From NCBI GenBank assembly GCA_964247055.1, contig OZ176059.1, forward strand, positions 2,294,001 to 2,358,000: DNA of 64,000 nt. The letters run 5' to 3'. Source of the DNA: Paragordius varius (lineage: Eukaryota > Animalia > Nematomorpha). The position numbers and the translations under genes were made by a program. Below, piece by piece: positions 1 through 55,534 of this stretch (position 1 is its first letter; each line of letters starts with the position of its first letter). The notes under the pieces are model-generated. The model searched no databases, was not told the origin of the DNA, and was given only the letters and a program-made list of their open reading frames with translations.

Positions 1-543
1 ACGTAAAAACTTAAAGACAAATATTTTTGTCAAAAGACAATTATACTTTGTCAAATTTTTTTATACAATTTCATTGTGGGGTTCACCCGTTATCAGGATT
101 TTACTTTTATTTTCATTTATAATCAGAAAATATCATTGGTTACCAATATACATTTCTATATCATATTATCCAATTTTTTCAAAAACAGCAAGTTAAAAAA
201 AGTACAGCGCAGTCTCTTAAAAAAATTTTTGTCCTTATATATTTTCATTTTGTCCGTATTATCATCTCAATTTTTACTGTAAAAAACAACTTAAAAAGTA
301 AAATATTTTGTTTAGAAAAAAATATAACCTATATAAATATATATATGATTCCAATTTTTTAACATTATGTTTGTTCCCACAACTATAATATTCCTTATTT
401 GGCAAACCAAAACAATAAAAATATACATAAATAAAAATAATTTTAAAATTAAGTTGTTTTTTTTTGAATTTTTTAAACATCATATGTTTTGCTTTAATAA
501 TTTAATATTTTTATGATATATAAATAAATTATATTTGTCTAAC

Positions 544-3500
544 CAAGAATTATTTTGAGGTATTCGCAAAAAAAGTTCATCATCTATTGGAATATTTTTG
601 TCAATATTTTCCATAATAGGTTTATCTACTATATCGATTGCGTTTAAATGGTTAGGGCTTTCAAGTATACCTTTCGGTGAGGATTTTGAAACATTAGAAT
701 CGTGTTTTAACTTATTTTTGTTATTAACTAAAGATAAATATATATATATATATATATATATATATATATATATATATATATATATATATATATATATATA
801 TATATATAAATCTTACAGTCATGTATCCTTTGTTTTATTAAAAATTTATTTTTTTTGCGTTAAATGGGTCGGTATAAATATTTGGTAAAGAATGAAAAAA
901 ACAAAGGCTCTATGGTAATTCTTATATATTTTTTAATAAATATCATATTGTTAAAACCATAGAGCTCTTGTTTTTTCCATTCTTTACCAAATAATTATAC
1001 CCCCATTTAAAGAAAGAATATAAATTTAATAAAAAATATATGACTGTAAATGAAAAATTGGAAGATACAGATATATAAAATAATATTTTATAACATCGGT
1101 TTTTGATACTATTAAATATATATATATATATATATATATTTATTCTTATGCGTTGAAATTACAACCGTATTATTTTTAAATAATAATAATATATACCATT
1201 TACAATTTCCAAATTCACCCTTGAACAAGTGAAATTTACTCTAAAAATCAATTATGAATTTTCGCGCGGTTAATATAACTTAAGATATGTTATTGAATAA
1301 AAAAATATATTGCTTTTACTATCCAGTATTTACTAACAAATTTCATTTTAAATAAAAATGGTTCTTTTTACAAATTTTACGTAGGACTTATTGGTTTTTT
1401 TAAGCTGGTAAATGGCAACATTTACTATTCTTTTTTCACCTAAAATAATATCGGTTATATTTTTATAAATTTCTAAGATAAATGTTTTTTTAAATTACAT
1501 AATTCATATATATATAAAATATAAACATATTAATATATTTATTTAATATTAATAATTGTTTTATTATTAATAATAATTTTTCCTTTCTCCATTTTAAGCT
1601 TTGTGCGAGTTCAATATACAGAGATGTGGATTCCTTTTTACCTTTTCCAAAATTATATAAATACTCGGTTTTGAATCCTTCGTTTCAGAATTGATATTCT
1701 TAAATTAAATAATTATACTCGGATAATCTTTCAAATAAAGGTTTTTCATATCAAAAATTAATAATTGCAATTTGATTTTCCAAGTTTATGTTTTAATTTT
1801 TCCAGATTCGAAATTATCGAACTTTACTTTGATTTGGTGTTTCATGTTGTTAATTTTTTTTCTGATTTAATATATGTTCAGATATTTGTCATTCATATTT
1901 TTAATTTCGACTTGTATTTATATATTATATGGATATATATATATATATATATATATTTATGTATCATTACTTTGTTTTTTTTATTGAGATTGTATAACTT
2001 TTGTTAAAAAATATTGGATTTTTTTCAAGAATGTTCCACAATTATATAACTTTCTTCGGTCATATCATTTTTGTTTGTGTAAAATATTTGAGTTTATATA
2101 CATTATAATGACCTTAATTTTATACTATAAACATTAATTGATAATATGTTGATGATGGCATATAGATTATCCGAGTATAATTATTTATAAAAAAAAATAG
2201 AAATTAAATCAGAAACGAAGGATTCAAAACCGAGTATTTGTTTATATAATTTTGGAAAGGTAAAAAGGAATCAATCCATTTACAAGGAACTCATATCTCT
2301 GCATATTGAACTCTCACAAAGCTTAAAATAGAGAAAGAAAAAATTATTATTAATAATAAAACAATTATTAATATTTATAAATATATATTAATATGTTTAT
2401 ATTATGTGATTTAACATTTATTTTATAGAAATTTTTTTATAACCGTATCCTTAAGTGAAAATAATAGTTTAGAATTTTGCCATTATTGATCTAACCCAAA
2501 TACTCAAGGATGGGCTAAAACGAGATTCAATTGTTCAAAAAAACAATATATATATTTTTGGTATATTTATGAATAAATGTGTGTATTAATAACTGCATTT
2601 GTAAAAAATGGGTAGATAATCGATGATATTTATTTTTCAATAGACGACTTTCTATTTTTATTATGAATATTTCAAACGCATTTTATAAATGAAATCGAAA
2701 ACAAAAAAAACAAAATGAAAATAAACATTTTACACACAATAAAGACTTAAAAGTACCTATTTTTATTCAATGTTTTTTTCAAAAAATGGTACATACCTAC
2801 TTTTTATTCAGCAGGCCCAATATCTTCATGGTATACTTTATTATTTTTTCCGTATTAGATAATTGATTTAAATTAAAATTTCATTTTTTTAAAAAATATA
2901 TAAAAAACATATAGGTAATTTTTAAACTTATCAAACACACATAATATATTTAACACTTCGATTCAAATTGGGGTATTTAAATACCCCGGACTAAATTTAA
3001 ATTAAAATTTTTAGAAAACTACTAAAGAAAACGGTCCCAATTTAAATTTATGCTTCTATCCTGATAAAAATTATATAAATATGCCAAAATATCTTGATAA
3101 AATTTTGTTTAGAAAAAAAAGTTCCACCTCAAACTACTTCGACGCCATTTTTATTTTACAAAAATTGTGCAAAATATCGTCTTCATTTAATTTTAAGGGT
3201 AAAACTAAAGCTTATTATATAAATTACATCTAACATGGATAGAAATAGAAAAAGCGGTTTATTTTGTATTATTTTTTAATTTTACAATTTGACACATGTC
3301 ACGTTGACTAAATTTTTACCTTAGTTTTAGCTCAAAATTAGTAATATCAAGTATTTTTAAATAAATTTTTTTATATATTTTGGTTTATTAATGTTATATA
3401 AGTGCAAAATTTTGCCATGGTTTCGATTGCTTCCATACTTTTTAAACTATTTGATTTTAAAGAGGCCTAGGGTATCCAACTACCCCAATTTGAATCGAAG

Positions 3501-53571: not shown

Positions 53572-55534
53572 TTATCTAGAATTTTCACCCATTATTTCTG
53601 CTGATGGCGCTGGTGTTTGATGTCGATTACTGGTATTATTCGTAGAGGGGGAGTTGTGATGAGTAGCATTTTTATTTTTATCATTATTGGTCATTTTCTC
53701 ATGGTGGCTATGATGGTGTAAATCAGTTTTAGGCGGTTGGTTAGGAGTGACATTTCTATTTTTATGATTTGCTGGTATAATTTCACCCTTTTTAGCTACG
53801 CGTATGCGGGTATGGGTTATAGCTGTGGGACCGGAATCAATGCCACCATGCGAAGCCAAATTTTTGCGATCAGATTCTAAAATGACAGGAAATTTGGCTT
53901 TCTTAATAAATAAAATTTAAAAATAGGTCACTACACATGTTTCCTTCTCACAATATAAAAAATATATATTTTTAACCAAACTCTGGGCTTTTCCATTCAT
54001 ATTCGTCAACATTTTTCCATTCAAGAGTTCAGTTCAAAAAGCGTTAATTTATATATACCATTTACAGTTCAAATTCACCCTTGAACAATTCAAATTCACC
54101 CTCGAACAATTCAAATTCACCCTTGAACAATTCAAATTCACCCTCGAACAATTCAAATTCACCCTAAAAATAAATTATGTGTTTTCGAACTAATATAACT
54201 CATTATTTATATAAAATATATCTTTATGGCATAATTTATTATTTTTTCAGTATTATTTTAATTAAAACAAAATTTTATTTTTTAAAAAATATATTAAAAT
54301 ATAGGTAATTTTTAATCTTAAAAAACATGTTATTTATTTGAGGGTGAATTTGAATTGTTCGAGGGTGAATTTGAATTGTTCAAGGGTGAATTTGAATTGT
54401 TCAAGGGTGAATTTGAATTGTTTAAGGGTGAATTTGAACTGTAAATGGTATACTCCTAAAAGAGCATATTTATTTGAATTTTAACAATAATAGCGTGAGA
54501 AATTGGCTATAATAGCAAAGCTTTGAGTTAGGTTCATGCACCCACTTTTAGTTATCTATTATATTTTCGCGTTTAGCCATAAAATAAAAATATATGATTT
54601 TTAGGATTTTTTAAGCGCACCAGGTGTTATTGCATATTATCCATCCATATTTTTTTAAAATTTATAAAGAAAAGTTTCGTCTTTAGTTTTAGCGCCACCT
54701 TTTAAATTTTAGCAGATTTATATTACAGCAAAAATTGACATAATCCACACACCAAAAACATAAGACAATTATTTTTTATAAAGACAACCATATTTTTTTA
54801 AACGTTGATTTTCATATTGATTAAAATTGTAAAATATAAAATTGATTGCGATACATATTTGGATTTATTTATGTTTTGTCTAATTTTAATTAATACATTA
54901 TATATAATTTAAATATTAAAAAAGGAATATTTAAGATTCATTTCATTACTTACAATGAAATAATTTAATTAAAAATGGGTTTTATTTTACATTTGTACCA
55001 ATAATAAATTATATATTTTGGCATTTTTATAATATCAATAATAGTTATTAGCATTACTATATTATAAGAATATAAAAATATTATATTTTAACAATAATAT
55101 ATCAAAGATTTTTCAGAAATTATTTAAATTTTTTATAAACAGCAACTTTTTACCTGTTTGATATTCATAGGCGTTTACGTTAGAATTTATATCATTCATT
55201 CCATGACATTTTTTGCATTCATTGTCATCGTCATTTTCGCTTGAACTTTCGGAGGATGCATTAGGATCTTCGGGTTTAACATATATGCAACAACCTAATG
55301 GTTATATATTATAGAATAGATGGTTACATTTTGATTTCTTTTTCCCCATGTTTTCATTGTCAACCGTTTTGCTATCCCAATTAACTTGTTTCCTGCATCG
55401 TGGCTTACGTAATTTAATTTTCACAGGAGGACTAATCTAATTTATAAAATTATATTTATTTTATATACAGGTTGCTGTTGTTCATGTTCTTGAATGGTTT
55501 GGGTAACAGTACCCGATACAATTGTGTTTTGCAT
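53572..55534 (-). CDS. PPP1R11: Protein phosphatase 1 regulatory subunit 11 / Inhibitor-3 (Ypi1 family), 4 exons, about 206 aa with C-terminal extension
   Basis: Exons 55534-55469, 55436-55328, 55294-55154, 53876-53572. Protein contains IKLRK..[27 protein letters not shown].KP (RVxF-type KQVNW plus CCCIY), an acidic Ser-rich tract and NAYE. Exon 4 is joined by phase-1 GT/AG sites. Confidence 0.92.
54056..54450. mobile_element. MITE family A (TIR TACCATTTACA(A/G)TTCAAATTCACCC; 21-bp unit TTGAACAATTCAAATTCACCC), in PPP1R11 intron 3
   Basis: Near-perfect inverted termini, tandem 21-mers in both arms, TA flanks. Confidence 0.9.

Follow-up and report, generated by a model that had tools for sequence, protein, structure and literature searches.

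Few features of animal introns are as conserved as the +5G of the 5' splice site and the //GURAG motif, which mirror pairing with U1 and U6; U1 nucleotides 3–5 and the U6 ACAGA box ordinarily pair with positions +4 to +6, and with +5G in particular. Do the genes at this nematomorph locus dispense with +5G, and if they do, what could specify their donors? We rebuilt gene models independently for a Vav-like RhoGEF, TPI, ARPC5, a PPP1R11-like gene and a small secreted protein in the 64-kb window, the whole stretch of DNA analysed here.

Rebuilt gene models and their donors

The Vav-like models were built from tblastn matches of P0001, a Vav protein of 970 aa, in the window and those of TPI, ARPC5 and PPP1R11 from Pfam and PDB alignments, and all in-frame GT-AG pairs between homology anchors were enumerated. 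This gave a high-confidence set of 17 GT donors, all from one window, each constrained on both flanks by homology at the protein level and by reading frame; for the Vav-like gene the set spans approximately 5.0 kb (SH2 and later parts lie below) to 21.3 kb. P0001 was taken as the Vav reference, an exhaustive protein search with the Vav DH exon having returned four weak matches. P0002 and P0004 traced to contigs of other organisms (L001, a metagenome scaffold of 26.8% GC, and L002, of 41% GC) and were uninformative. The Vav-like donors are as follows.

21074–21079, minus strand: donor 1, aaa-GTAATT; only in-frame GT-AG pair between P0001 anchors q172 and q177
19651–19656, minus strand: donor 2, aag-GTTTTA; exact-length solution (+5G is missing from the alternatives GTCGTT and GTTAAG too)
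19234–19239, minus strand: donor 3, gaa-GTATAA; unique solution, equal in length to the homologue
18097–18102, minus strand: donor 4, tgg-GTATGG, with +5G; exact-length solution, where the RhoGEF-domain exon ends
16615–16620, minus strand: donor 5, aaa-GTATAT; exact-length solution
15255–15260, minus strand: donor 6, ttg-GTAATA; unique solution
14452–14457, minus strand: donor 7, tcc-GTAATT; best length fit to the homologue among three in-frame options (the others, GTGGTT at 14472 and GTTGAC at 14469, lack +5G)
13050–13055, minus strand: donor 8, aag-GTCATT, with +3C; unique solution
12267–12272, minus strand: donor 9, aag-GTATTA; unique solution
11545–11550, minus strand: donor 10, aag-GTAAAA; phase 2, matching the acceptor at 9433, exon end forced before an in-frame TAA (nor does the alternative, GTTATA at 11707, have +5G)
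9309–9314, minus strand: donor 11, aag-GTTTTA; unique solution
7082–7087, minus strand: donor 12, aca-GTTAGT, with +5G and +3U; phase 2, matching the acceptor tttacag-A at 6499, the joint reading LQDNLKPG versus AQQDNIKP in the homologue
6293–6298, minus strand: donor 13, aaa-GTATTA, within the C1 domain; its use brings back the C1 motif CQNCEYKAHKQC (+5G is missing from the alternative GTCAAA too)

The GT donors of the remaining genes, and one unanchored site, are as follows.

46994–46999, minus strand: TPI donor 1, tcg-GTATTT, intron of 1043 nt ending at 45957; sole solution without junk residues
45793–45798, minus strand: TPI donor 2, aaa-GTTTTT, intron of 1851 nt ending at 43948; sole solution without junk residues
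47981–48015, plus strand: ARPC5 micro-intron of 35 nt, donor cga-GTATTT; unique solution
48193–48198, plus strand: ARPC5 donor 3, aag-GTAGTG, a lower-confidence candidate junction; the canonical pair 48193–48333 adds 19 residues
55295–55327, minus strand: PPP1R11-like micro-intron of 33 nt, donor aat-GTAACC; only solution, restoring the conserved KSKCCCIY motif
55432–55468, minus strand: PPP1R11-like micro-intron of 37 nt, donor cct-GTATAT; joins an MNNSN start to LPPVKIKLRK, at medium confidence because exon 1 lacks homology support
36077–36082, plus strand: donor caa-GTAAGT, with +5G, in the gene for a small secreted protein, which has two exons; predicted from ORFs, with a signal-peptide exon in frame with the ORF at 36815
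538–543, minus strand: GTTAGA, with +5G, cited by the first-pass annotation; its exon is the ORF 812–544, taken without homology

It is doubtful that ORF 812–544 belongs to the Vav-like gene. The best protein fit at the last ARPC5 junction requires a non-canonical end. Pfam searches of ten further ORF pieces of the window yielded no more genes for the donor sample, an exact look-up of the ORF at 29993–30457 found it not on record, and a word search with the PPP1R11 exon found no match.

Alternative GT-AG solutions exist at Vav-like junctions 2, 4, 5, 7, 10 and 13 and at TPI junctions 1 and 2. None of them adds a +5G donor, and exhaustive enumeration found no in-frame GT-AG alternative with +5G at any homology-anchored junction.

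Donor composition and splice-site classes

The first-pass annotation had claimed that donors here are nearly devoid of +5G, and in the rebuilt models +5G occurs in 2/17 high-confidence GT donors (12%; 95% CI 1.5–36%), confirming its loss in the donors of these predicted, homology-anchored genes. Inclusion of three lower-confidence donors gives 3/20, and addition of the unanchored site 543 gives 4/21; the four +5G hexamers that had been listed are all present where they were placed (GTATGG at 18102, GTTAGT at 7087 and GTTAGA at 543 on the minus strand, and GTAAGT at 36077 on the plus strand). The rate of 2/17 does not differ from background, G being found at 10–13% in introns and 13% at decoy GT sites, and it is inconsistent with true frequencies of at least 0.4 (P=0.012), 0.5 (P=0.001) or 0.78 (P=1e-8).

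At +5 the 17 donors have T11, A3, G2 and C1, at +4 they have T10 and A7, and at +3 they have A12, T4, C1 and no G; nearly all of them are A or T from +4 to +10. Since decoy GT sites have T at 0.44 and A at 0.30, the +4 counts show no excess over composition, and positions +4 to +6 carry no information above background. On the exon side, 11/17 have A at -2, and position -1 is G in eight and A in seven. Acceptors are UAG in 14/17, which together with the absence of G at +3 suggests that AT drift has been general, reaching all positions that tolerate it. Exons have 32.5% GC and intron interiors 21%; the Gordionus montsenyensis assembly has been described in a preprint as having 26.9% GC and a BUSCO completeness of 71.6%.

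The T fraction from +4 to +12 is 0.59 in the donors as against 0.40 in a set of 689 decoy GTs from introns (Mann-Whitney P=2e-5), so that a U-rich tract lies within the approximately 20 nt downstream of weak donors where TIA1/TIAR-type tracts are expected. The real donors are complementary to the canonical U1 pairing sequence at a mean of 4.9/9 positions, and 23% of decoys reach the real-site median, implying that extra cues are needed.

Metazoan 5' splice sites fall into two major classes, AG//GUNNN (U5 loop 1) and NN//GURAG (U6 ACAGA), which account for 45.1% and 53.6% of human sites, respectively (PMC11732430). The NN//GURAG class (+3 purine, +4A, +5G) is represented by none of the 17 high-confidence donors and by 1/20 overall (GTAAGT at 36077), and the AG//GU class (-2A, -1G) by 5/17, all of them AAG-GT, with another 7/17 ending in A. 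Some of the donors here, the 5/17, share AG//GU with the AG//GUNNN class, and A-rich exon ends with a purine at -1 fit a reliance on exon-side pairing. However, 12/17 belong to neither class, unlike the metazoan system in which the two together comprise ~99% of human sites. A literature search found no description of nematomorph splice sites, and this degenerate donor consensus, undescribed in an animal, probably extends genome-wide.

AT-AC introns

Two further introns are best modelled with AT-AC termini.

41860–43812, minus strand: TPI intron 3, gag-ATAAAT ... atatac-GAT; this model exceeds PDB TPIs by 2 aa
47826–47907, plus strand: ARPC5 intron 1, 82 nt, aag-ATAATT ... ttatac-TGG; contains an in-frame TAA at 47827–47829

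For TPI intron 3 both GT-AG solutions were rejected because they insert at least 40 unrelated residues, and for ARPC5 intron 1 the enumeration of in-frame pairs gave zero GT-AG solutions. Assignment of the two to the U12 type was also rejected, as they start with ATAAATAT and ATAATTTT and not with an (A/G)TATCCTT donor; no U12-like branch motif (TCCTTAAC-like) is visible in the last 35 nt read of the AT-AC introns.

The appendicularians Fritillaria and Oikopleura are said to have remodelled splice signals and many non-canonical introns, and the present lineage would likewise be an animal lineage that is off the metazoan splice-site consensus with non-GT-AG introns present. It differs in that most introns here keep GT-AG, the extended consensus being lost and AT-AC being occasional.

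How the donors could be recognised

The reading that we prefer, which could well be right and could equally be wrong, is that the U2-type donors of this AT-rich animal have decayed to approximately AR-GUA plus a U-rich tract under AT pressure, and that no change in the pairing sequences of the snRNAs is required. Strong AT mutation pressure would have driven splice sites to A or U at all positions that tolerate them, leaving donor choice to rest on a minimal GUA and the exon end (-2A, -1 purine) pairing with U1 and U5 loop 1, and also on the U-rich sequence directly downstream and the abrupt change in composition at the exon-intron border. TIA1/TIAR-like proteins would bind the U-rich sequence and bring in U1 by way of U1C, and the change in composition would act in the manner of AU-rich intron recognition in plants. 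In metazoans the prevalence of U-tracts anticorrelates with donor strength, and in plants UBP1/RBP45 act on U-rich introns (PMC2766253). The donors described here resemble the sites of TIA1-TIAR (Nam8, UBP1/RBP45) support in being weak and followed by a U-rich tract that is absent from decoy GTs, and the strong AU contrast between introns and exons is like that of plant AU-rich intron definition (PMC2766253). Unlike in known animals, where U-tract support is auxiliary and confined to a minority of weak sites, it would be the norm here, through a putative binding protein. Against this reading, the tract could simply reflect how introns are composed near exon borders and be no signal, accurate splicing of the 12/17 donors in neither class is not accounted for by mutation pressure alone, and Dictyostelium, a very AT-rich eukaryote, reportedly keeps +5G.

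If true, an intron-rich animal with most of its donors outside both classes would be a natural experiment showing the minimum RNA-RNA pairing that a spliceosome requires, with the rest supplied by proteins that bind U-tracts, by pairing on the exon side and by the contrast in composition. Annotation of such a genome is likely to go wrong when gene finders have been trained on ordinary donors.

A rather doubtful alternative is that the machinery has been remodelled, with changed U1 and/or U6 pairing, or loss of METTL16 (U6 m6A) or SNRNP27K, such that //GURAG became disfavoured and +4U and a non-G at +5 accepted. The absence of //GURAG and the predominance of donors in neither class speak for it, as do +4U being at least as frequent as +4A (10 versus 7), the near equality of -1A and -1G (7 versus 8), which would suit a U1 C9U change, and the unusual tolerance indicated in the window by three introns of 33–37 nt alongside two U2-like ones with AT-AC ends. 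In Saccharomycotina a +4A-to-U switch is tied to loss of METTL16/SNRNP27K, and +4U is no rarer than +4A in the donors here; however, U1 and U6 pairing sequences are unchanged there, the U6 ACAGA box and U1 ACUUACC being invariant in 240 fungal species despite +4 switches (PMC10581693). Moreover, the +4 frequencies here equal the decoy background, the T enrichment is tract-like over +4 to +12 with no single compensating position, and canonical U1 and U1 with C9U separate donors from decoys about equally. The yeasts with the +4 switch reportedly have few introns and strong, near-invariant donors and keep +5G, unlike the genes here, which are intron-rich, have lost +5G and mirror background composition at +4. 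Because the yeast METTL16-loss phenotype is said to keep +5G, loss of METTL16 would not predict the pattern seen here. AT pressure combined with U-tract or AU-rich intron definition fits at least as well as remodelled snRNAs, and the indirect evidence leans against any need for changed U1/U6 or loss of METTL16/SNRNP27K. In Rfam searches of the window, neither the gathering score nor a cutoff of E<=1 brought up an snRNA gene, and the sole matches were weak miRNA-like ones on hairpin repeats.

We consider it more doubtful still that the lineage has abandoned U6 ACAGA-box and U1 nucleotide 3–5 pairing in donor choice through changed snRNAs (such as U1 C9U) and/or loss of U6 m6A or SNRNP27K, with //GURAG gone genome-wide and U2-type AT-AC introns and micro-introns of 22–37 nt permitted.

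No sequencing runs on record as RNA and holding the stretch were found. Among reads on 42481–48480, those of runs X5 and X3 cover the introns, marking these runs as DNA, and runs X6 and X8, guessed to be RNA and carrying the same species label, gave matches of only 33–37 nt (for example within TPI exon 1) and so come from a divergent organism; none of the four gave spliced joints. That the junctions are mispredicted or the window unrepresentative, with real donors having ordinary +5G, is very improbable: the absence of spliced joints from these reads, the want of a canonical model for the last ARPC5 junction and the derivation of sites 543 and 36077 from ORFs would allow it, but the exhaustive enumeration offers no +5G alternative, most junctions have a single solution at the exact length of the homologue, and an independent haplotype breaks the frame within a predicted intron. 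This second haplotype, in run X3, lacks 1 nt at 47984 and carries an inserted CT after 48005 in the 35-nt ARPC5 intron, a net change of +1 nt that would shift the reading frame were the stretch coding.

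Genes and the donor sequence

The window has a GC content of 24%, with exons of our gene models at 32.5% and intron interiors at 21%; a published assembly of Gordionus has 26.9% GC. The following animal genes are present:

~21.3 kb to 5.0 kb or lower, minus strand: Vav-like RhoGEF, with RhoGEF and C1 exons by Pfam
35990-36987, plus strand: small secreted-protein gene, two exons, ~91 aa, signal peptide and then FETDEVRRCWQDVENPDPSSYVSCFPQN..., with no Pfam match
47174-41581, minus strand: triosephosphate isomerase (TPI), four exons covering Pfam TIM positions 2-244
From 47627, plus strand: ARPC5, by homology
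~55.1-55.5 kb, minus strand: PPP1R11/Ypi1-like gene, by homology

The Vav-like gene gives 14 tblastn exon matches, all in order, to P0001, a 970-aa Vav protein with CH, DH, PH, C1, SH2 and SH3 domains. At 2507-2566 (minus strand) its frame has a stop directly after the motif that ends SH2 (FFEQLNLVLAHP*), with no GT ahead of the stop, and this Vav-like protein may end without an SH3 domain, or else the match may have arisen by chance.

For each pair of neighboring exons, homology-supported residues served as anchors, and all GT...AG pairs were listed that keep both frames open and whose joint departs from the homologue's length by a few residues at most. Most junctions have a single GT-AG solution, often of exactly that length, and the alternatives at junctions 2, 4, 5, 7, 10 and 13 of the Vav-like gene and 1-2 of TPI include none with a +5G donor. 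This yields 17 high-confidence GT donors (13 in the Vav-like gene, two in TPI, and one each in ARPC5 and the PPP1R11-like gene); three further donors of lower confidence lie outside this set.

Only two of the 17 have G at +5 (95% CI 1.5-36%), the remainder being T (11), A (3) and C (1). True frequencies of at least 0.4 are excluded (P=0.012), and the observed frequency equals that in 689 intronic GTs not used as donors (decoys; 13%); the scarcity of +5G is thus real for these predicted gene models, and +5 carries no signal whatever in them. The first-pass annotation had counted four +5G donors among 24, and these are found at 18102, 7087, 543 and 36077, the last two supported by open reading frames only. 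The hexamers that it listed (GTATTT, GTATTA, GTATAT, GTAATT, GTAAAA, GTTTTA and GTTTTT) are likewise all present, and the near-absence of +5G is borne out by the homology-anchored donors and their in-frame alternatives alike.

Other positions do differ from the decoys. A occupies +3 in 71% of donors versus 26% of decoys (A12, T4, C1, G0), and the T fraction from +4 to +12 is 0.59 versus 0.40 (Mann-Whitney P=2e-5); +4 taken alone (T10, A7) matches the decoys. On the exon side, -2A is present in 11 of 17 and a purine is enriched at -1 (G8, A7), and the acceptors are UAG in 14 of 17, with two CAG and one AAG. Matches to the canonical U1 pairing sequence average 4.9 of nine positions and never exceed six; 23% of decoys reach or surpass the median complementarity of the real sites, and five perfect GTRAGT hexamers lie unused inside introns.

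AT-AC introns and micro-introns

Two neighboring genes contain AT-AC introns, neither of which has a U12-type motif, and three introns are very short:

41860-43812, minus strand: AT-AC intron, TPI intron 3, donor ATAAAT
47826-47907, plus strand: AT-AC intron, ARPC5 intron 1, donor ATAATT
47981-48015, plus strand: 35-nt micro-intron, ARPC5
55295-55327, minus strand: 33-nt micro-intron, PPP1R11-like gene
55432-55468, minus strand: 37-nt micro-intron, PPP1R11-like gene

There is no GT-AG alternative for ARPC5 intron 1, and the only GT-AG solutions for TPI intron 3 insert at least 40 unrelated residues. Among recorded sequencing runs, none listed as RNA contains this region. Reads of sequencing runs X3 and X5, aligned to 42481-48480, cover introns, and both runs are thus DNA. 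The X3 haplotype differs inside the predicted 35-nt ARPC5 intron: one nucleotide is deleted at 47984, among the Ts at +4 to +6 of the donor, and CT is inserted after 48005. This net change of +1 nt would not be tolerable were the stretch coding in a conserved gene.

For the last ARPC5 intron (48192-48390, plus strand), canonical ends fit no model with a C-terminus of normal length (WHEK/VYLKCLGGEMYGIV...), which requires GT..GG or GG..AG; the GT-AG pair at 48193-48333 adds 19 unrelated residues.

Explanations for the donor sequence

The common thread is A/U at each position where the spliceosome tolerates it, as seen at +3 (A, never G), at +4 to +6 and at acceptor -3 (U, not C). Human donors are 53.6% NN//GURAG and 45.1% AG//GUNNN, and the two classes are about equally frequent in metazoans (PMC11732430); in contrast, no donor here is //GURAG, five of 17 are AG//GU, and 12 belong to neither class. 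These 12, together with the near-equality of A and G at -1 and the presence in one window of AT-AC introns lacking U12 motifs and introns of 33-37 nt, keep alive the earlier proposal of a remodelled machinery, through changed U1/U6 sequences or loss of METTL16 or SNRNP27K. No snRNA gene was found in the 64-kb window. Against remodelling, the bases at +4 simply follow composition, and the excess of T is spread over a tract rather than confined to a single compensating position. Yeasts with +4A/U switches retain +5G. Among 230 yeasts such switches accompany METTL16/SNRNP27K loss, but the U6 ACAGA box and U1 ACUUACC are invariant (PMC10581693).

On these grounds we favor AT mutation pressure combined with assisted donor definition. 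Such pressure would turn donor and acceptor positions tolerant of A/U into A/U, and the resulting weak donors could be defined with the help of proteins, much as TIA1/TIAR recruit U1 via U1C at weak donors with a downstream U-rich tract, and of AU-rich composition, as in plant intron recognition (PMC2766253). A degenerate 5' splice site followed by a U tract is of a known kind; what appears to be new is its occurrence as the rule in an animal. We found no description of nematomorph splice signals in the literature.

Repeats and divergent reads

A ~21-nt tandem repeat family has intronic and intergenic copies in both orientations, with frames reading KDQLELF, LNNSSWS or NLNCSRT, and MITE-like repeats that form hairpins have weak matches to Rfam miRNA families below threshold (MIR1507, mir-3202):

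7.5-8.9 kb, 10.4-11.4 kb, 19.8-20.1 kb, 42.3 kb, 43.7 kb and 54.0-54.5 kb: ~21-nt tandem repeats
886-986, 5148-5265, 15957-16055, 16234-16331, 17441-17529 and 21457-21555: MITE-like hairpin repeats

The hairpin repeats are probably palindromic transposon remnants and not miRNA genes. A further repeat of ~560 bp is present in three tandem copies at 49.4-50.7 kb, with the common reading NAGFVIWYRKTGRPIQIQTSKKYNH.

Runs X6 and X8 share the species label of the DNA runs, and their matches within 42481-48480 are only 33-37 nt long, with just 37 nt matching TPI at 88% likeness or above. Because these matches are so short, X6 and X8 come from another, divergent organism or from a sample that was mislabelled.
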